This document shows positions 281 through 44,744 of a stretch of DNA of 58,071 nt, piece after piece (the stretch's first letter is position 1; every line of letters begins with the position of its first letter). Position numbers and translations under genes: made by a program. The DNA is from Gracilinanus agilis (taxonomy: Eukaryota): NCBI RefSeq assembly GCF_016433145.1, contig NC_058132.1, positions 88,863,392-88,921,462 on the forward strand, in the 5' to 3' direction. The notes below the pieces were generated by a model. That model saw nothing but the letters and a program-made list of their open reading frames with translations, ran no database searches and was not told where the DNA came from.

Positions 281-1234
281 ATGGAAGACTTCAATGCCAG
301 TAGCATTCCTTCTTCTACATTCTATCTTACTGGAATTCCTGGTTATGAGGCAATACACCACTGGATCTCTATCCCCTTCTGCATCCTCTACTTTATTGGA
401 ATAGTAGGTAATTGCACAATCCTTCATGCTATCTGGAATGACCCAAGCCTCCATGAACCTATGTACTACTTCTTGGCGATGTTGTCTTTTTCAGACATGG
501 GCATGTCCCTTCCCACCCTCGCATCTGTCCTCCGAGTGTTGTGGTCTATTTCTAGGGAAATTGAATTCAACACTTGTGTGACACAGATGTTTTTCATCCA
601 TGCCTTCTCCTTCACAGAATCAGGAGTGCTCCTAGCAATGGCCTTTGATCGCTATGTAGCTATTTGCCATCCCCTAAGGTATGCCACCATCCTTACCCCA
701 CAACGTATTGCTAGAATTGGAATATTTGCTTTTCTTCGGAGCTCCCTCCCTGTCATTCCATTGATGATCCGACTGAAATACTTCCCATTCTGCCATTCCC
801 ATGTCCTCTCTCATTCTTACTGCCTGCATCAGGATATAATACGCCTGGTTTGTGCAGACACCAAATTTAACTTTATCTATGGGTTACTACTGGTCACTCT
901 ATTCTGGGGATTAGATTCTCTGGGCATCTTGGTGTCTTACATCTTCATCCTTCAATCTGTGTTGAGCATTGCTACATGGGAGGAGAGACTGAAGGCCCTG
1001 AACACATGTGCCTCTCACATCTGTGCTGTTCTCATCCTCTATGTGCCCATGATTGGCCTTTCCATTGTCCATCCTTTTGCCAAGCATGCCTCTCCTCTTG
1101 TGCATGTCCTCATGGCTGACATCTACCTGCTAGTGCCTCCTGTTCTCAATCCCATCATCTACAGTGTGAAAAACAAGAAAATTCGTAGGGGGATCATTCA
1201 CCTGATCACCCCCAAGAGATTTCACTCCACCTAG
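281..1234 (+). CDS. Class I olfactory receptor, OR51 family, intact single-exon CDS (317 aa)
   Basis: ATG at 281. OR motifs LHEPMYYFL, MAFDRYVAICHPLRY, SHSYCLHQD, KALNTCASH, PPVLNPIIYSVK. N-terminal NAS sequon. Acceptor-like TTTTTTTAAG about 30 nt upstream. Exact orthologue not recognised. Confidence 0.96.
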   Translation: MEDFNASSIPSSTFYLTGIPGYEAIHHWISIPFCILYFIGIVGNCTILHAIWNDPSLHEPMYYFLAMLSFSDMGMSLPTLASVLRVLWSISREIEFNTCVTQMFFIHAFSFTESGVLLAMAFDRYVAICHPLRYATILTPQRIARIGIFAFLRSSLPVIPLMIRLKYFPFCHSHVLSHSYCLHQDIIRLVCADTKFNFIYGLLLVTLFWGLDSLGILVSYIFILQSVLSIATWEERLKALNTCASHICAVLILYVPMIGLSIVHPFAKHASPLVHVLMADIYLLVPPVLNPIIYSVKNKKIRRGIIHLITPKRFHST

Positions 1235-15285: not shown

Positions 15286-16181
15286 TGCCATGGAACTACT
15301 GGCTAAATTCATTAGATGGCAATGCTGTCTCCAAGAACCTTTGAGTGATCAGTCTCAAAGACTACTAATTCACCAAAAAGGTTGAGTAGGCTGGTTCTAA
15401 CCCCACCCTGAGTAATTCCCTTGTTCAAGGTGTCACACAGCTATTATGGAGAATTCAAACAAAGGAACAGGGCCTGTGTTCCACTCTAATTCTAAAGTCA
15501 CTCACCTGCATCTTGCCTTATAAATTGACACTATTTAGGTAATACTAGCCATAAGGTGGACTGTCAGAGACCCTACTTCTTATACTCTAATTTTTGTGGC
15601 AGAGAACATAATTCAGAACCAAGAGAATAATAGCTGATTGGCCAGCACAGAGGTAATTGCCAGATAAAATGCATGGATGGCTTGAGATATATTGCAGAAG
15701 AAACCGCTCACATTAAATACAACTATCTACATGCAGCTGAACAATTTGGGGGGTTTACATAGCCTCTATTTCCTGAGTTAAGAATTAAACAAATCCAGAC
15801 TCTAAACAAGAGATCTAATTTGTCATCCACATAGGGCTAAGTTTAAATAATTCCGCAAAGATTTCCCACAGCCTTTATGTTTTATAGTATTTATTATGAG
15901 ACCAGGTGGCTTTCTAATGCTCATTTCTGCTATTTAGGAATAAAATGGTTCATAGAGTGTACTCAGGAATTAAAAAAACAGCAAGAGAAGAGGAAAAGTG
16001 GGCTAAGAATATAGATGAAAAGAAAATGTATAGGTAAATGCAAAAATGGTTAAAAAGCAAGCAACTAAGTATAATGACAAAATACAGTTTGAATTCTTTG
16101 TTACAACTGCTTTTGTGTCTTTCATTTCCTTATAGAAGTAAGTGGGTGTGGAATGGGATTGTGGCTCTACACAGAAGTTCC

Positions 16182-17141
16182 ATGGCAGACTTCAATTCCA
16201 GTAGTTCCCTATCCACTACATTCTATCTCACTGGAATTCCTGGATATGAGGCACTATACCACTGGATCTCCATCCCTTTCTTCATTCTTTATATGATTGG
16301 AATACTGGGAAACTGTACCATCCTTCATATTGTCCGGACTGACCCAAGCCTCCATGAACCCATGTATTATTTCTTGGCCATGTTGTCGCTCACTGATATG
16401 GGCATGTCCCTTCCCACACTTGTTTCTCTCTTTAGAGTGTTGTGGTCCATCTCCAGTGAGATTGAATTCAACACATGTGTGATACAGATGTTCTTCATTC
16501 ATACTTTCTCCTTCACAGAATCAGCAGTGCTCCTAGCAATGGCCTTTGACCGCTATGTAGCCATCTGTCACCCCCTGAGGTATTCCACCATCCTCACCCC
16601 AAAGCGCATCATTAGGATTGGAATAACAGCTGTTTTGAGGAGCTCTCTCTCCATTATTCCACTAATGATCCGCCTTGCATACTTTCCTTTCTGCCACTCT
16701 CACGTTCTCTCTCACTCTTACTGCCTACATCAGGATATGATTCGCTTGGCTTGTGCTGACATTAAATTTAATGTCATTTATGGATTGGTTTTGATCACTA
16801 TTCTATGGGGATTTGATGCCTTGGGCATTCTGGTTTCTTACATCTTCATTCTCCGTTCTGTGCTGAGCATTGCATCCCAGAAGGAAAGACTAAAGGCTCT
16901 CAACACATGTGCCTCCCACATCTGTGCTGTTCTTATCCTTTATGTGCCCATGATTGGTCTATCTCTTGTTCATCGTTTTGCAAAACATGCCTCTCCCCTT
17001 GTCCACATTTTCATGGCTCATATCTACTTGTTGGTGCCTCCCATACTCAACCCTATCATCTACAGTGTGAAAACCAAACAGATTCGTTTAGGGATCGTTC
17101 GTCTACTTCTCCCTAAGAGAATCCATTCTACCTGGGAGTAG
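16182..17141 (+). CDS. Class I olfactory receptor, OR51 family, intact (319 aa from the ATG at 16182); paralogue of 281-1234
   Basis: All OR motifs present, including HRFAKH. Aligns to the first OR from Met49 of the 367-aa track ORF, with 59 differences over 317 aa by hand count. A polypyrimidine tract and AG at 16134-16135 suggests the upstream 48 codons are largely intronic. Confidence 0.96.
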   Translation: MADFNSSSSLSTTFYLTGIPGYEALYHWISIPFFILYMIGILGNCTILHIVRTDPSLHEPMYYFLAMLSLTDMGMSLPTLVSLFRVLWSISSEIEFNTCVIQMFFIHTFSFTESAVLLAMAFDRYVAICHPLRYSTILTPKRIIRIGITAVLRSSLSIIPLMIRLAYFPFCHSHVLSHSYCLHQDMIRLACADIKFNVIYGLVLITILWGFDALGILVSYIFILRSVLSIASQKERLKALNTCASHICAVLILYVPMIGLSLVHRFAKHASPLVHIFMAHIYLLVPPILNPIIYSVKTKQIRLGIVRLLLPKRIHSTWE

Positions 17142-24852: not shown

Positions 24853-25815
24853 TTAACAAGATTTTGTAAGGTGGAAAAGTCCTAGTACTCGCACTCGTAT
24901 CTCTGTGGTCCTCACCCCATAGACAATGGGGTTCATCGTAGGGGGCACCAGCAGATAAAGGTTGGCAAGAAGGATGTGGGCATGATGGGGAACATGGGGA
25001 CCAAAGCGGTGAGTGAAGAAAGAAAAGAAGGCCAAGGTGTAGAAAACGAGGATAACACAAATATGTGTCCCACATGTTCCAAAGGCCTTTGCCCGGGCTT
25101 CACCTGAGGACAGTCCCAATATTGCTCTGAAGATTAGCCCGTAGGAGACAGCAATGAGGATGAAGTCCAGGCCTGTGGTAAGGAATGCTGCTGTAAGTCC
25201 ATAGACACTATTGAGTGTGATACTGGCACAGGCCAGCTTGGCTATGCCCATGTTCTCACAGTAGGTGTGAGGGATGACATTGGTCCGGCAAAATGGCAGG
25301 CGGAGGATGAGGAGGACACCAGGAATAACCACAACCACACTCCGAGCCACTAGGACCAACCCCATCTTTCCAATGATAGAAGTAGTGAGTAGCGAAGTAT
25401 AGTGGAGAGGGGTACAGATGGCAACGTAGCGGTCATAAGCCATGGCAAGGAGTACAGCTGACTCTGAGAGGAACAAAGCGTGAACAAAGAACATCTGAGT
25501 GAGGCAGGCTGCAAAAGTAGATGTAGTTGGACCCTTCCAGAAGATAACAAGCATTTTGGGGACAGTGACTGTGCAGAGGATGATATCATTGAGTGCCAAC
25601 ATAGCCAAGAAGAGGTACATGGGTTCATGGAGATTCCGGTCCCCAGCTACCACCACCATCACCAGCGCATTACCCACCACAGCCAGAAGATACATGAGGA
25701 AAAAGGGGATGGAGATCCACACATGGACTGCCTCCAGCCCTGGCACACCAGTGAGCAGGAAGGCCAAAGGCTGAGTGGAAGTGTGATTGGGTTCCAGGAG
25801 AGCAAAAGAACCAAT
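24853..25815 (-). CDS. Class I olfactory receptor, OR52 family: open, motif-complete frame (320 codons from ATT) lacking an ATG before TM1
   Basis: LHEPMYLFL, MAYDRYVAIC, HTYCENM, KAFGTCGTH, HRFG, PPTMNPIVYGVRT, and an NHT sequon. The track start at 25872 is TTG inside a polypyrimidine tract. ATT sits at 25815-25813 where an ATG is expected. Functional status is uncertain. Confidence 0.8.
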   Translation of the reverse strand: MGSFALLEPNHTSTQPLAFLLTGVPGLEAVHVWISIPFFLMYLLAVVGNALVMVVVAGDRNLHEPMYLFLAMLALNDIILCTVTVPKMLVIFWKGPTTSTFAACLTQMFFVHALFLSESAVLLAMAYDRYVAICTPLHYTSLLTTSIIGKMGLVLVARSVVVVIPGVLLILRLPFCRTNVIPHTYCENMGIAKLACASITLNSVYGLTAAFLTTGLDFILIAVSYGLIFRAILGLSSGEARAKAFGTCGTHICVILVFYTLAFFSFFTHRFGPHVPHHAHILLANLYLLVPPTMNPIVYGVRTTEIRVRVLGLFHLTKSC

Positions 25816-25817
25816 TT

Positions 25818-25872
25818 CTGTGACACAGGATGGAGAAATCACAGAAGAAGTAAGTGAGGAGAGAATTAGCAA
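25818..25872 (-). promoter_or_regulatory. Splice acceptor (branch point, polypyrimidine tract, CAG) of the OR52 coding exon
   Basis: Minus strand ttgCTAATtctctcctcacttacttcttctgtgatttctccatcctgtgtcaCAG|aaattgg; AG at 25819-25818. Confidence 0.75.
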
Positions 25873-25992
25873 TCACAGAATCAAAAAGTAGAAAGGAAAC
25901 ACACAGGTACTCTAGATATTCCAACATTAACAGATATTTTCTCAGCTGGATACCAAGAAAGTAGTGTTTAAGCCACTTACTTGAAGACATAT

Positions 25993-26614
25993 TGATCCCA
26001 CTGTCTCTTAGGTAGTATTATGAGGAAGAGTTTAGGCATTTAGTGACATTAGCATCCAGGCTGTCAGGCTGTCTCTAAGGACCTGGGAGTTTCAACCATG
26101 GAATGAAGAGAAGAGAACTGCTGCCTTGAGGGACTCTGGAGAAGGCTGAGACAGCGAGAGTGTGTGGATGCTTTTACCTATACCACTGAAGAGCCCAAGT
26201 AGTGTGGATTTAACACAGAGAAGAAAGACATGCCAGTGAAAGATCAAATGAGCAAGAAGATCTAACTGAGGTGATAGACATCCCAGTCTGAGTCAAGCTC
26301 CTTAATTTTCCTTTTCTTCAATTTACCTTACTGTGAACCTGTTTTCCCATAACCATCAAGAGAAGTGGACAAAATCTGTGAGAGATCCAATGCTTTTCCA
26401 AACTGTGTTGGAGTCTATGTTAGAGCAGTGTAGTTGTTGACCTATCTCTCAGCCCTTGTCTTTGTCTTTTAGTGTTCTAGGTTTAGTGTGCTCTCTCCCC
26501 GTTATCCCTAACTCCTAGTCTTTATTAAACTTGTGTTTTATAATTCTTTTGTCCCAGTCTTACTGCTGTTTGTTGGTTTCATAGACTTCCAGGTTAGGTG
26601 GATCTGAGATGACA
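25993..26614 (+). mobile_element. Solo-LTR-like element immediately 5' of the OR52 coding exon
   Basis: TG...GACA ends, ATTAAA at about 26524 followed by a T-rich U5-like tract. TSD not found. Confidence 0.45.
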
Positions 26615-26759
26615 ATTGGTATCAATTGTCATTTCAAGATTCCCCATACCCTGTATTTTGGTGTGCTTTGTGTTTCCCCAATTTGTTGGTTTCCAGTCTG
26701 TTATCCCTGACCTAATCTTACCTCCTGTTCCTCACTCTTTAAATGCAGTAATTATAAAG

Positions 26760-26960
26760 TTACTTATAAGAGTAGTCAATTCAACCATAAAGAAACAATT
26801 AGTTTTAGGGTTCTTCCCCACTAAGCTTAAGCCCAAACCTAGTTCTCTGCTATTTCTATCTATGATTTCTAGATTTGTCCCTCTGGGACCAAGCAGAGCA
26901 AATTTAATCACTCTTCCACATATCAGTGCTTTCAATATCCTAATACTATGTGCCCAAGAT
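26760..26960 (-). mobile_element. CR1/L3 3' fragment
   Basis: Minus strand atgtggaagagtgattaaatttgctctgcttggtcccagaggg resembles the CR1 C-terminal region. Confidence 0.5.
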
Positions 26961-27199
26961 AAGCTAGGAAATAGATGTCTAAGATAATTGAGAAGGTTGT
27001 AAGATAACCTAACTATACTCCTAATTGACCTTATTGTCATCATAGAACTTAAACAGAACACTATCTCTGGAGTCCGAGAACTTGGATTCAAATCTTACCT
27101 CTTTATAGCCTGCATGAGATTCACTTTATCTCCCTAGGTCCAAGTGTTCTAATTTCTGAAATGCTAGGAGGTGAAAGATGTCAGAATAAGTGAACTAGA

Positions 27200-27360
27200 T
27201 CAACTAGTAAGTATTTTTGTCTCGTGGACCCCTTTTGAATTCTGGTGAAGACTGTGGACTTCTCAAAATAATAATGTGTAAAAATACAAAGGAAATTAGT
27301 TATATTAAAATAAGTATCAAAATAGGGGGAAAACAGTCAGTCACCAGGTTAAGTATCCCG
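27200..27360 (+). mobile_element. Degraded hAT-type MITE fragment
   Basis: tttttgtctcgtggacccc...ctggtgaagactgtggac...ccaggttaagtatccc. A related antisense piece lies at about 39170-39245. Confidence 0.45.
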
Positions 27361-28133
27361 ATCCAGTTGGTTTCTAAAGTCCCTTGTACCACTAGGTCTA
27401 TGAATATGAGGCATTAAGTAAAGATAAATTAGATCCTAAAGTTGTGAAAGAATTTACTGATGAAAATGGTAAATCACTACAGTGAGCTTTGAAGGATTAT
27501 GTGTTATAGGAGATACTACCTGCTTGGAGAAGGACAAATGTCCTGTTTTAAAAAAAAAAAAAAGAGGTGAGTAGAGTTTGTAAACTGGCAAGGGGCTTCA
27601 TTTTGTTTCTTCATGTGATTCTAAAATAGATTATCAAAGGATTGATAAATAGATTATAGAAAAGAAACAATGATCATAATAAGGAAAGAAAAAAACTTTC
27701 TAAAGGGCAAGTAATTCCAGACAAAGCTTAGTTCTATTTTTACAGAGCTACTAGGGCAAGATATTGGAAGAATTTTTCCCTCTATATATGATTTTTGTTA
27801 TGTATATGATACAAACTAACATAAATGCTATGGAGCATGGTTTGGTGTTATATATAAATACGAACTATGTGTGCACATTTGCATACCTACCTGCAAAACT
27901 AAGTACACAAAATTTAATCCAAAAACTGATGCCTTAAAAATAAAGTAAAAACTAAGACTGAACACTGTAATTAAAAAAAAAAAAGCAAAAGGAGCATCTT
28001 GTGTACATATTTAAGTATTTAAAATGAAAACAGTCATTACCACAAAACTAGTCTAAACTGTATTGTTTATATGCAAAAAACCCAAAACAAACAAACGAAA
28101 AACTCCTGAGTCTCTGCTCCAAACTTTTCTTAC

Positions 28134-28330
28134 CTCCTTGCAGAAGTTTGAAGAGGTCTAGCCTGTCCTGTGTTTGGCTCAAAGCCAATCCCCAGAGTTA
28201 AGGCATGTACTTTTCTTTGAGAGTGATAAATACTTTTTCAATCAGTTATATTTCCTGTCCTTTTAGGATCTTGGTCAGAAAAGTGTATGACAAAGAATAA
28301 AGATTCCTGGTCAATTAAACTGTCTGAGTC
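28134..28330 (-). promoter_or_regulatory. Candidate 5' exon and promoter of the OR52 gene at 24853-25815
   Basis: Strong donor GAG|GTAAGA (GT at 28133-28132), O/E-like TCCCCAGAG at 28189-28197, homeodomain-type TAATTG (minus) at 28317-28312, in non-repeat sequence. Inference only. Confidence 0.45.
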
Positions 28331-30502
28331 TCAGAAACTTTCTAAGGAAGAACAGATACAGGGAGGGCTATTTTGCATCTGAAGATTTTATCTTTTGCAT
28401 TTCTTTTCTGACCTTAATTTTTTGCTGGAGTCACTGGGACATAAATATTTTATATGTAATATTTAAAAGGACTAAATATAACACCTAAATTTGTGGTTTA
28501 AACATCAACTTCAAAAAATAGAAGTTTAGCTATTTACATTCATTTCAAAAGAAGTTTAGATTCATTTAAAAAAATTGTGGAGTTTTATTGATATATAAAT
28601 TCAAGATAAGTAAGCAGCAAAATATGTTATTTAAAAATCAGGCTATGTTAAGAGAAGAGTTATTAAGAGTTATTAAGAATATAATTGTTTTGTTCTGATG
28701 TTTTTAGTCACGTCTCTCTCTTTGTGACACTATTTGGGATTTTCTTGGAAAAGATGAGAGTGGTTTGCCACTTCCTTTCCCAGTTCATTTTACAGAGAAG
28801 GAAACTTAGATGGATTTTAGTTGTTTAGTACCTAGAGCAATGGAATCAAACTCAAATAGAAAGGAGTCCACCAATCTACTTATAAGGATTCCTATGAGTC
28901 ACATAATGACACTGTAAAATCTATTTTATCAAATTTTTATTTATATATATTATACATTTCCCAATTACATATTTATCTGTTTCAGACTGCACTGAAGCTC
29001 TAAAGAAAATGAGGGAATTAAGGGGATTAGGACTGCAAATGGTTAATTGTGAGAACTGAGTGAACCATACTAGCAGTATCTTGTGACTCAGTTCTAGAGA
29101 TAGCTTAGTTCACTTTCTTTTCAGTTATGGGTCTTATCCAATTTCTGTCTTGTGAGAAAATTATTAAATTGTGGGAATTGGTAGAGAAAATCTTACTTCA
29201 TTGTTTGAACAGAGCCATGTGTGGCTGGGAAACTGCGTCACCTTTCCCTGCTCTTTAGAGATCCTTAACTAAGGACCTAGGTTATGCAGACCAGAAAGTC
29301 AGTCAGACCCAATGACAGATGCAAGGATTTTTCTCACTATTGTACATGTCACACAACCCATATATCTTATCTGAAAAATGGCCAAATCAACATTCAGTGA
29401 TAGTTCCTACGATCCATTGATTATTTAATTATAATTTTGGATAGCAGAAATATTTAATTTTTATCAATTCAGGAAATTGAACCTGTTTTCTCTCCCATTC
29501 CCATCCTGTAAAGTTCTTAATCTTATCCTCCAAATAGAAATCATAATGCCTAATTGTATGTCGTGTACTTTTAATTAATCGTCCTTATTTCCTTCATTGT
29601 TTTTAATATATAAAATCTATCTACTCCTATGTTTGGGCTCCAACCCTGAAGCTTAGGAAGAGGCCTGATCCTGGTTTCTTAGGCAGTTGGCGTGAATGCT
29701 TAATGAATAAAAATGCTTGAAAGATCAATCTTTTTTTCCTCAGTTATTTCATCTTTCCCTCCCCATAGAGCTGTTGCTCTTGGTTACCTAACCAGTATGG
29801 GTCAGAGGAAAGACTCAAAAACTCATGTCTTTTGGGCTTCTCCAGATGCTTTCTATGATAAAGAAAATATTGTCCTGTCTTTAAACATATCGATAGAATA
29901 TTCACCTAGTTTCTATTAGCTTACTCTCCTATGTTCACATTTCACGAGTATTGACAGGATAGAACAACTCCTATGTGCATTACATTTTCTGCTCTTCCCA
30001 GCTAAGAGTCAAAAAAGTCAGATGGGAGAAAATGATTAGTCTGGCCAGGGAAAGGTAGCCTAAACGTCAGGGAACTGATGAAGATTATCTTCAGGGACTC
30101 CCCAAACATCTTGACTTATTCCCCAAATCAAGTAGAGTTAAAAGATCAGAAAATACCTTTTAATTGCATTGCTTTCCCAACCATTTGGCAAAGAAATCAG
30201 TTGAGGCACTAAATCTCTCCTTACTTTTAGGATCTGAGATGCTCCAAAGCCAATTGCTAGTGAAACAACTATAAGTAAGAGAAGATATGTGCTTTTTGTG
30301 TGTCGGGGTATGTGTCTGTACACTCACATTTTATACACATAGCCTAGAACCTTTCATATCTGAGAGTCATCTGGGAATCACAGCAGATGAATCTCTGAGG
30401 TCATTGCAAGGGAGGACTTCAAGTAAAGCATTATGTAAATTGGCAAGGGAGATGGATGAATATATCTGTCTGTCTGTCTGTCTCCCTTACCAATTTTATA
30501 CA

Positions 30503-32780: not shown

Positions 32781-35700
32781 CAACAATAATAGGGAAATAA
32801 GAAGGGAGGGGAGAGAAAAGGAAATACAAGAAGGGAGGGATTAGGGGAACTGATTAAAAACAAAACACTTTTATAGAAAGAAATAGGGAAAGAAGAAAGG
32901 GCAGGACAAGGATAGGGAACCAAAATATCTGGGAATGCACAGTTGATAATTGTAACTCCAAATGTGAATGGGATGAACTTGCCCATAAATGAGAAGCAAA
33001 TAGCAGAGTGGATTAGAAAAAAAAATCCTACCATATGTTGTCTACAAGAAACCCACATGAGGCAGGCAGAAATACATAGAGTAAAAATAAAAGGCTGGAG
33101 TAAAATCTATTGGGCTTCAACTGAGAAAAAGAAGGCAGGAGTTGCAATCATGATTTCTGACAAATACAAAGTAAAAATAGATCTTGTTAAAAGAGATAGG
33201 GAAGGTAATTACATCCTGATAAAAGGAAATATAAACAATGAAGAAATTGCAGTACTCAACATGTATGCACAAATGGTATAGCATCTAAATTTCTAAAGGA
33301 GAAACTGGCAGAGCTCAAGGAGGAAATAGATAATAAAACTATACTAGTAGAAGACCTAAACCATCCATATCAGATCTAGAGAAATCAAACCAAAAAATAA
33401 ATAGGGAAGAGATAAGAGAGGTGAATGAAATACTAGAAAAATTAGAATTGATAGATTTATGGAGGAAAATAAATAGGGACAAAAAGGAATACATCTTCTT
33501 TTCAGAAGCACAAGGCATATTCACAAAGACTGACCATGTACTTGGGCATAGAAACATGGCAAACAAATGCAAAAAAGCAGAAATAATAAATGTAACCTTC
33601 ACAGATCATAATGCAATGAAAATAGTCATTAGCAAGGATACATGGAGAGGCAAACCAAAAACTAATTGGAAATTATAAAATAAGACTCTCCAAAATATGT
33701 TTGTTAAAGAACAAATCATAGAAACAATTAATAATTTCATTCAAGACAATGACAATCATGAGACTTCTTAACAAAACCTATTGGATGCAGCTAAAGCAGT
33801 ACTAAGGGGAATATTTATATCATTGAGTGCATATATTAACAAATTATGGAGGGCAGAGGTTAATGAATTGGGCATGCAACTTAAAAAATTAGAAAACAAG
33901 CAATTTAAAAATCCCCAGATGAAAACTAAATTAGAAAGACTAACAATCAAAGTAAAAGAACTATTGAATTAATAAATAAGACTAGAAGCTGGTATTTTGG
34001 AAAAAAACAGATAAAATAGAAAAAGTACTGGTAAATATAATTTTTAAAAAGGAAGAATAAAACCAAATTAATGGTATCAAAGATGAAAAGTGAGTTCTCA
34101 CATCTAATGAAGAGGAAATTAAGGCAATCATTAAAAATTGTTTTGCCCAGTTATATGGCAATAAATATAGCAATCTAGGTGAGATGGTTGAATATTTACA
34201 AAAATATAAATAGCAGAGAAATAGAATACTTAAATAATCCCATATCAGAAAAAGAAATTGAACAAGCCATCAAAGAACTCAATAAGAAAAATTGCCAGGG
34301 CCTAATGGATTCACAAGTGAATTCTACCAAACATTCAAAGAACAACTAATCCCAATACTATACAATTTGTTGACACAATGAGAAAAAAAAGGAGTTATAC
34401 CAGATTCTTTTTTATGACACTAATATGGTACTGATTCCAAAGTCAGGAAGACCCAAGGATTTGTTCAACATTAGGAAAAGCATTCACATAATTGACTATG
34501 TCAACAAACATACTAAAATCACATGATTATCTCAATAGATGCAGAAAAAGCCTTTGACAAAATACATCACCCATTCCTATTGAAAACATTAGAAAGCATA
34601 GAAATAGAAGGATCTTTCCTAAAAATAATAAACAGTATATATCTAAAACCATCAACAAGCATCATATGTAATGGGGATAAATTAGAAGCCTTCCCAGTAA
34701 GATCATGAGTGAAACAAGGATGCCCATTATCACCTCTATTAAATAACATTGTACTAGAAACACTAGCAGTAGCAATTAGAAAAGAAAAAGAAATTAAAGG
34801 TATTAAAATAGGCAGTGAGGAGACTAAGCTATCACTCTTTGCAGATGATATGATGGTATACGTAAAAAATCCTAGAGAATCCATTAAAAAGCTAGTGGAA
34901 ATAATCAGCAACTTCAGCAAAGTTGCAGGATACAAAATAAGTGCACATAAATCATCAGCATTTCTATATGTTCCCAACACATCTCAGCAGCAAGAGTTAG
35001 AAAAAGAAATACCATTTAAAATCACCCTAGACAATATAAAATATTTAGGAATCTATCTACCAAAACAAACACAGGAATTATACGAAAACAACTATAAAAC
35101 ACTTTCCACACAATTAAAACTAGATCTAAACAACTGGAAAAGCATTGATTGCTCATGGGTAGGACAAGCTAACATAATAAAAATGACCATCCTACCCAAA
35201 TTAATTTACTTATTTAGTGGCATACCTATCAAACTATCAAGAAACTTTTTTACTGCATTGGAAAAAACTATAATAAAGTTCATATGGAAAAACAAAGATC
35301 AAGAATATCAAGGGAAGGGGGCAGCTGGGTAGCTCAGTGGATTGAGAGCCAGGCCTAGAGACAGGAGGTCCAATTTCAAAATCTGACCTCAGACACTTCC
35401 CAGCTGTGTGACCCTGGGCAAGTCACTTGACCCCCATTGCCTAACCTCTCTTCTGCCTTGGAGTCAATATGTAGTATTGATTGATACATAGAGATACAGA
35501 AGGTAAGAGTTTAAAAAAAAGAATATCAAGGGAAATAGTGAAAAGAAAACATGAAAGAAGGTGACCTACCAGTACCAGATATTAAAATGTACCATAAAGC
35601 AGTGGTCATCAAAACAATATGTTACTGGCTAAAAGACAGAAGGGAGGATCAGTGGAATAGACTTGGAGTAAGTGTTGTCAGCAAGACAGTCTATGATAAA

Positions 35701-43321: not shown

Positions 43322-44266
43322 TCAGGCCTTTAGGGGATTAAAGACTTTGAGGATTCTCTCTCGGATTCTCTTTGTCCTTACCCCATAGATAATAGGATTT
43401 ACCATAGGTGGAACCAGCAGGTAGATGTTAGCCACAAAAATGTGGACATGAGGAGCAACATGGTGTCCAAATCTGTGTGTGAGGAATGAGAAAAAGGCTG
43501 GGGTGTAGGAAACTAATATGACACAAACATGAGATCCACAGGTCCCCAGGGTTTTGAGACGTGCATCCTTAGAAGGCAGCTGGAAGACAGTATGGAGAAT
43601 GAAAATGTAGGAACAGATGATTAGTATGAAATCCAGTCCTCCAGTAAGGAATGCAACAATTAGGCTATAAGCTCTCCGTATTCTAGTCTCTGCACAGGCC
43701 AGCTTGATCAAGGCCATAAACTCACAGTAGGTATGAGAGATGATATTAGTTTTACAGTAGGGAAGCCATCTGAGTAGAAAGGGGTGAGGACTAAGTAGCA
43801 CAGCTCCACGGAAAATAATAGCCAACCCCATGCTCCCAATGACTGTGTGGGTCAGGATTGCCGAATGTCTAAGAGGTTTACATATGGCCACATAGCGGTC
43901 AAAGGCCATGGCCAGAAAGAAACCAGATTCCATTGTGGAGCAGGAATGAATCAAAAATACTTGTGTGAGGCAAGCTTCAAACCGGATTTCCCTGTCTCTG
44001 AACCAGAAGAGGCTGAGAAGCTTGGGTATAGCAGTGGTACACACAATCAGGTCTGCCACAGCCAACATGCACAGGAAGAGGTACATGGGCTCATGAAGGC
44101 TTGGGTCAGTTTTGATGATAAAAAGCAAGGCAAAGTTTCCCAGTAGAGCCAATATGTACACCAGGCAGAAAGGGATGGAAATCCAGATGTGAGCCGTCTC
44201 TAGTCCTGGAATTCCAATAAGAATGAAAGTGGAAGGATGAAGATTGGTCTTGTTAGAGAATGTCAT
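43322..44266 (-). CDS. Class I olfactory receptor, OR52 family, intact (314 aa from the ATG at 44266)
   Basis: LHEPMYLFL, MAFDRYVAICKPLRH, SHTYCEFM, KTLGTCGSH, HRFGHH, PPMVNPIIYGVRT, and an NKT sequon. The track start at 44293 is TTG, so the real start is Met10. Acceptor-like ttcttcttgatcttcttcaaAG at 44310-44309. Confidence 0.96.
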   Translation of the reverse strand: MTFSNKTNLHPSTFILIGIPGLETAHIWISIPFCLVYILALLGNFALLFIIKTDPSLHEPMYLFLCMLAVADLIVCTTAIPKLLSLFWFRDREIRFEACLTQVFLIHSCSTMESGFFLAMAFDRYVAICKPLRHSAILTHTVIGSMGLAIIFRGAVLLSPHPFLLRWLPYCKTNIISHTYCEFMALIKLACAETRIRRAYSLIVAFLTGGLDFILIICSYIFILHTVFQLPSKDARLKTLGTCGSHVCVILVSYTPAFFSFLTHRFGHHVAPHVHIFVANIYLLVPPMVNPIIYGVRTKRIRERILKVFNPLKA

Positions 44267-44744
44267 GTTTCTGACTGTCAATGTATGAGACAATGGATAT
44301 TTTTGAACCTTTGAAGAAGATCAAGAAGAAACCAAGTTAACAAATGTAATCAGCTTAAATTATCAAAACCTCAAATGAAAAAAGTAAAGCTAGAATTCAC
44401 AGGCCACTGAGATTATCTTTTTTATCTCATAAGTCCGAGAAGTCCCTTGAATTTCAGTGAGTATCTGTAAGCCTTTCTGTCCATAACACTTTGCCTCATC
44501 TGAGTACTGCTCCAGATCTCTCCATGGCCACTTATGACATCATGCTGTTTTAACAAAGCTAGAGTACCTAGAATTTGGGAAAGTGTTTTAGAGGCTGATA
44601 TCATGTGGACCTGACAACTCTGCATGTGCAATGAATACATGCTGTGTGAGGCAGCCTAACATCTGGATGTCTGTTGTACTTCTTTACTAATGAGAAAAAT
44701 TCTGTCTTTGGATACTGCTAGATAAAAATCACAGATTTCTTGCT

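Follow-up and report, generated by a model that had tools for sequence, protein, structure and literature searches.

The window, a stretch of 58,071 nucleotides (nt) from Gracilinanus agilis, covers a cluster of class I olfactory receptor (OR) genes (Table 1). One of these, on the minus strand, is an intact class I OR frame of 320 codons (25815-24856) that was recovered both in the open reading frame (ORF) list and by translation. It encodes the N-H-T glycosylation sequon and the motifs LHEPMY, MAYDRY, KAFGTC, and NPIVY, and residues 38 to 312 match the Pfam family 7tm_4 (E = 2.4e-103). The encoded protein matches residues 5 to 324 of the G. agilis protein XP_044524782.1 at 100% identity over its 320 residues, and the 13,138 nt surrounding the gene are identical to record CM028237.1 of assembly GCA_016433145.1. 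A preliminary description of this locus had reported an uninterrupted 320-codon frame with all OR motifs and the sequon, a first in-frame ATG lying within TM1, and a listed start at 25872 that is in fact a TTG upstream of a splice acceptor ending in CAG at 25818; the sequence agrees on each count. From this TTG the frame is free of stops as far as the TAA at 24855-24853. No in-frame ATG precedes TM1, and the first one, at residue 41 (PFFLMYLLAVVGN), is unusable as the start of a full receptor. Truncated models in several genomes nevertheless begin at this TM1 Met (P0051, P0052, P0054, and P0057).

The receptor gene and its neighbors

In a protein search, the gene shared 95% identity with its counterpart in Monodelphis and 74 to 79% identity with eutherian OR52Z1/52Z1P-like proteins, with OR52D1/B2-like paralogs at approximately 60%. 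Phylogenetic analysis placed it within the therian OR52Z1 clade (support 100/98), which includes mouse Olfr607 (NP_001357824.1, also named "olfactory receptor 52Z1" [Or52z1]) and has genes of alligator and turtle as its sister group. By sequence comparison, it is the G. agilis ortholog of OR52Z1 and of mouse Olfr607, a class I OR of the OR52Z1 orthogroup. The public model XP_044524782.1 ("olfactory receptor 52D1-like") is named after a paralog, whereas the tree groups the gene with OR52Z1 and not with OR52D1.

Orthologs of the gene have a conserved neighbor on the opposite strand, 7 to 8 kb downstream. The OR51-like gene contained in ORF 16038-17141 occupies the place that this neighbor has in other marsupials; its translation probably begins at an internal Met, that of MADFNSSS. 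For another OR52-like gene, the ORF list gives TTG as the start (MSHTLTVRNMTFSNKT...), and an in-frame ATG of this gene encodes the M of the sequence RNMTFSNKT, so that its start looks ordinary.

Table 1. Features of the window and of orthologous loci (a slash marks a splice junction; positions at other loci are given as locus:position)
Feature	Position	Strand	Remarks
OR51-like gene	281-1234		
OR51-like ORF	16038-17141	+	N-terminal extension of ~49 residues; gene about 16185-17141
Exon 2 coding part	24853-25817	-	AA (25817-25816) completes split Glu codon; 320 codons from ATT; stop TAA
First in-frame ATG of main exon	25693-25695	-	Inside TM1
ATT (Ile) codon suspected as lost ATG	25813-25815	-	Orthologous codons compared
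Splice acceptor	25818-25900	-	Pyrimidine-rich tract; candidate branch sites ctcac and cttac; ends cacAG
Proposed intron	25818-30156	-	4,339 nt, phase 1; from donor and acceptor positions
Proximal candidate ATG TCT TCA A/GTAAGT	25975-25990	-	ATG 25990-25988; donor GT 25980-25979; intron 163 nt, phase 1
Splice donor GT (candidate)	30155-30156	-	AAG/GTATTT, phase 1; GTA invariant in nine species
Proposed exon 1 coding part	30157-30169	-	ATG CAA TTA AAA G (Met-Gln-Leu-Lys and first base of Glu)
In-frame upstream ATG	30182-30184	-	ccaaATGg, strong context; five codons before conserved ATG; would add MVGKA
LINE-1 (L1) reverse-transcriptase-like fragment	34709-35332	+	207-residue ORF, between receptor genes
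OR52-like gene	43322-44293	-	
ATG of start piece, Gracilinanus	window 30169		
ATG of start piece, Monodelphis	L004:6216		
ATG of start piece, Dromiciops	L005:6261		
ATG of start piece, Trichosurus	L006:2949		
ATG of start piece, Sarcophilus	L007:10		At locus edge; comparable in its downstream flank alone
ATG of start piece, Rousettus	L001:2001		
ATG of start piece, Dasypus	L002:2001		
ATG of start piece, Callospermophilus	L003:2001		
ATG of start piece, Elephas	L008:16458		

A candidate start exon upstream of the main exon

The sequence running into the main exon reads tcctgtgtcacag/AA ATT GG, with the AG of the acceptor at 25819-25818 and no other AG over the 81 nt of pyrimidine-rich sequence before it. 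In the form ACAG/A or TAG/A, this acceptor is kept in nine of nine therian species as well as in mouse. A Phe, Ile, or Leu followed by Gly is conserved directly 3' of the acceptor among orthologs, indicating that these residues are translated, and a start further upstream is therefore needed. In each of the nine species, the stretch from the upstream stop to the glycosylation sequon contains no in-frame ATG, and both the acceptor and its phase are conserved.

Three independent eutherian NCBI models begin with MHLK/DFG, MYLK/EFG, and MHLE/DFG. At the eutherian loci, the first coding piece is an ATG plus 10 nt followed by GTAAGT or GTAAAT, situated 2.0 to 3.4 kb upstream of an ACAG/A or TAG/A acceptor. 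Using blastn, eutherian exon 1 regions of 600 nt were compared with the window, and one useful seed was obtained amid many chance matches, namely, 16 nt at 30169-30154 that matched exon 1 of Rousettus; this seed is convincing only after comparison across the marsupials. With the Monodelphis locus located by means of an NCBI partial model (P0124), an ATG plus 10 nt plus GTA was found upstream of the main exon at all nine therian loci examined (five marsupials and four eutherians), and the same piece is the first coding exon of the three eutherian models. The distance from the conserved ATG to the LTG(I/V)PGLE motif of the main exon ranged from 1.9 to 10 kb in the other eight therians.

To judge by an 800-nt alignment of four marsupials, conservation is concentrated on this piece. 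The longest invariant run was the 18-nt sequence CAATGCAATTAAAAGGTA (30171-30154), which begins two bases 5' of the ATG and ends with the donor GTA, and the next longest was 10 nt. Invariant columns made up 44% of the alignment, and conservation averaged over 30 columns peaked at the start piece, at 0.90 versus a background of 0.44. Positions +4 to +5 of the donor fall below consensus in marsupials (AAG/GTATTT or GTACTT); eutherians have GTAAGT or GTAAAT. Within the window, an ATG with an open frame and a phase-1 GTA within 5 kb was found at approximately 90% of random positions, and the case for the distal exon is therefore made by its conservation and not by its motif. The implied N termini read MQLK-E-(I/F/L)G in marsupials versus MHLK-D-FG, MYLK-E-FG, and MHLE-D-FG in eutherians.

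Three further features lie close to the start piece. The in-frame ATG five codons upstream was seen in Gracilinanus, with GTG at this position in Monodelphis, Dromiciops, and Trichosurus, and appears specific to Gracilinanus. A TTATAG located approximately 105 nt 5' of the distal ATG was weighed as a possible internal-exon acceptor and rejected, as Monodelphis has TTATAC. Lastly, a second conservation peak among the four marsupials (30371-30400, minus strand), some 200 nt upstream of the start exon, contains the invariant sequences TGATTCCCAG and CCTCAGAGA and may be a promoter element of the receptor gene.

It is quite likely that the locus is a functional class I OR gene with two coding exons, the start being carried by an upstream exon approximately 4.3 kb away. 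Transcription would proceed through or from the distal exon (30169-30157), and translation would initiate from the conserved ATG (30169-30167) or, possibly, from the lineage-specific ATG that lies in frame at 30184. In opossum olfactory neurons, the phase-1 intron of 4,339 nt would be removed between the donor GT (30156-30155) and the acceptor AG (25819-25818). Exon 1 would give 13 coding bases, the last of which, G, forms Glu with the AA at 25817-25816 and is followed by Ile-Gly-Ser-Phe; joined in phase 1 to the main exon, the piece reads MQLK-E-IGSF. The sum of 13 nt, 2 nt, and 320 codons is 325 residues, and a full-length ORF (approximately 300 to 330 residues) is obtained only by joining the two exons. 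The predicted product would be a 325-residue receptor beginning MQLKEIGSFALLEPNHT, with a normal extracellular N terminus bearing the N-H-T sequon.

Other possible starts and selection on the main exon

The NCBI gene range corresponds to 25990-24853 of the window, and the first exon of XP_044524782.1 is the proximal piece (MSSK-IGSF) rather than the distal one. A start at the ATG at 25990, spliced from the donor at 25980 to the same acceptor, whether as the main form or as a lineage-specific alternative, thus matches the gene range exactly; in addition, the donor hexamer is perfect, the phase is right, and A occupies position -3 relative to the ATG. An ATG with a phase-1 GTAAGT within 400 nt was found at just 2.7% of random positions in the window, which makes the proximal candidate mildly unusual but not compelling, and murid rodents show that a new pair of ATG and donor can evolve in the OR52Z1 gene. 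However, the G of this donor (25980) corresponds to T in Monodelphis and to A in Dromiciops, which also lacks the ATG itself. The distal exon is, moreover, intact in Gracilinanus, and a transcript from it would place the proximal piece within the intron. On balance, we regard the proximal start as improbable.

The public models themselves point the same way, as those of marsupials each take another first exon, suggesting computational completion and not a transcript basis. The NCBI models of elephant, Dromiciops, Petaurus, Notamacropus, Vombatus, Phascolarctos, Trichosurus, and dasyurids have mutually inconsistent first exons or truncated starts. None of the models in this group begins with the residues encoded by the 13-nt start piece, which is present at the Elephas, Dromiciops, Trichosurus, and Sarcophilus loci; the Elephas model omits the conserved piece lying 1.9 kb upstream. 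The RefSeq first exon for the Gracilinanus gene is thus probably the wrong one, and for the marsupial orthologs and the elephant, the RefSeq models very likely have an incorrect first exon or a truncated N terminus. XP_044524782.1 has the same main exon and acceptor as the structure proposed here, and a two-exon coding sequence in phase 1, but differs in using a nonconserved proximal ATG and donor (MSSK) in place of the conserved distal exon (MQLK).

A start within the main exon that was recently lost, from ATG to ATT at 25815-25813, would make the gene a young pseudogene or the codon an assembly error. An ATG at this site would give a plausible N terminus, and the human ortholog is labelled a pseudogene in curated lists. 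The homologous codon is, however, ATT in Monodelphis, TTT in Dromiciops, Trichosurus, and the four eutherians, and CTT in Sarcophilus, with ATG in none of the nine species. The ATT codon, the sixth of the predicted protein, is accordingly read as an ordinary internal codon derived from Phe that would never have been a start, because orthologs carry ATT, TTT, or CTT. As ATT is shared with Monodelphis and the window matches the public assembly exactly, there is no assembly slip peculiar to the window.

Selection on the main exon was examined using Nei-Gojobori pairwise estimates, with branch counts obtained by parsimony. The ratio of nonsynonymous to synonymous substitution rates (dN/dS) was 0.11 to 0.15 among the five marsupials and 0.09 to 0.13 between Gracilinanus and eutherians, and the terminal branch of Gracilinanus carried 23 synonymous and nine nonsynonymous changes (omega of approximately 0.14). 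Intact frames of 315 to 320 codons were present in all nine orthologs. The main exon is under purifying selection, and the gene is not decaying. With dN/dS at 0.09 to 0.15, on the Gracilinanus branch as elsewhere, and an ancestral codon for Phe and not Met at the site, the locus does not resemble a start-loss pseudogene, and a recent loss or assembly error is very improbable.

Least probable of all, to the point of being scarcely credible, is initiation in the main exon at the AUU at 25815 or another near-cognate, non-AUG codon, for which the sole support is that the exon has no ATG: AUU is not conserved, with Phe or Leu codons elsewhere, the bases just upstream of it belong to the conserved acceptor tract, and a conserved AUG-bearing exon explains the data with no need of a rare mechanism.

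The preliminary description had offered three explanations for the missing ATG. The orthologous codons contradict a base error or a recent change from ATG to ATT, and AUU initiation, at a codon that itself varies among species, is needless given the upstream exon; the third, in which an upstream exon provides the start and a phase-1 intron separates it from the main exon, is the best supported, since the phase is right and the 13-nt piece is conserved in nine of nine species. Its view that the lack of other lesions reflects continued function is borne out by dN/dS values of approximately 0.1 to 0.15. Of the comparisons it proposed, the alignment of orthologs from five marsupials and four eutherians gave the pattern of a spliced start with no ATG at the site, and the dN/dS estimate was not neutral.

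Comparison with known split receptor genes

Split OR genes number 13 in human and 41 in mouse, the mouse set having been curated from olfactory RNA-seq (Barnes et al., 2020; PMC7055050). Many of them had formerly been called pseudogenes, as their main exon has no conserved initiator Met, and more than 90% have their intron within the N-terminal domain or TM1 (PMC7055050). Very short exon 1 coding parts were often rejected by the authors because their orthology was untraceable (PMC7055050). Among the 41 mouse genes is Olfr607, with an ORF of 327 and an intron of 2,920 nt after residue 6 (PMC7055050, Supplementary File 3). Its conservation is recorded in rat only, a human ortholog is stated to be lacking, and marsupials and other eutherian orders are not described (PMC7055050). 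OR52Z1 is not named in the main text of Barnes et al. (PMC7055050). A table belonging to that paper lists human OR52Z1 as an unprocessed pseudogene; an earlier paper treated it as functional.

The split of Olfr607 is reproduced at the mouse locus, which reads ATGGATATCACAATAAGAG/gtaatt ... tatag/AA CTC, with a phase-1 intron of 2,920 nt and the same acceptor position. Olfr607 is thus alike in being an ortholog with its start in an upstream exon, a phase-1 intron, an acceptor just before the sequon, and an intron of kilobase size (2,920 versus 4,339 nt). It differs in having a coding piece of 19 nt (MDITIR plus G), whose ATG and donor lie further upstream than the pan-therian piece, by approximately 60 nt. 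Where the ancestral piece lies in mouse (L009:3079-3093), ATGAACTCACAAG is followed by GC instead of GT, and together these differences mean that the start exon of OR52Z1 can be remodelled. Murids appear from this comparison to have taken up, 60 nt upstream, a new pair of ATG and donor once the ancestral donor had changed to GC, an instance of start-exon remodelling within one ortholog. Models of Peromyscus begin MNPQ-E-LNTT, which would fit the ancestral start piece. Transcripts of one ortholog (mouse, from the literature) thus support the acceptor and the phase as well as the use of the upstream region, and the exact donor differs in murids.

The closest nonmammalian relative is an Alligator mississippiensis gene labelled "OR52D1" (P0049), which shares 71% identity and belongs to the sister clade. 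It differs in that its coding sequence occupies a single exon and has its own ATG there, four codons ahead of the sequon; the start would therefore have left the main exon along the mammalian lineage, prior to the divergence of marsupials and placentals. A fuller history can be proposed, tentatively and as an unlikely though not negligible case, in which, after this departure, the pair of ATG and donor was remodelled more than once in the OR52Z1 lineage, a single change to G at 25980 in Gracilinanus having created the perfect donor GTAAGT behind an ATG already present. The opossum gene might then yield two isoforms, MQLKE... and MSSK..., in addition to the in-frame variant MVGKA-MQLKE.... If true, such a two-isoform gene would show the turnover of a start exon still under way in a sensory receptor.

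In comparative olfaction, the number of receptors counted and the fraction called pseudogenes hinge on ORF finders that expect a single exon, by which this gene and its orthologs would be scored as start-less or truncated. The pseudogene suffix in OR52Z1P should not alone, our results suggest, imply loss of function in other mammals. The layout itself is a known one that is often misannotated, and what the case offers is a corrected annotation and a modest evolutionary data point, with no new mechanism. New here are the conservation of the split start across Theria, as predicted for this one specific receptor structure, and the probable error in the RefSeq first exon.

Like the split OR genes described previously, the Gracilinanus gene is a locus whose main exon has no conserved initiator Met. 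Unlike them, it has a very short exon 1 coding part of four codons and one base, predicted here from sequence. As regards the features by which split OR genes are recognized, the initiator Met and the junction are conserved in the five marsupials and four eutherians compared, and no conserved downstream Met gives a single-exon ORF of the correct length. The marsupial gene would join a known kind, as an ortholog of a curated split OR gene of mouse.
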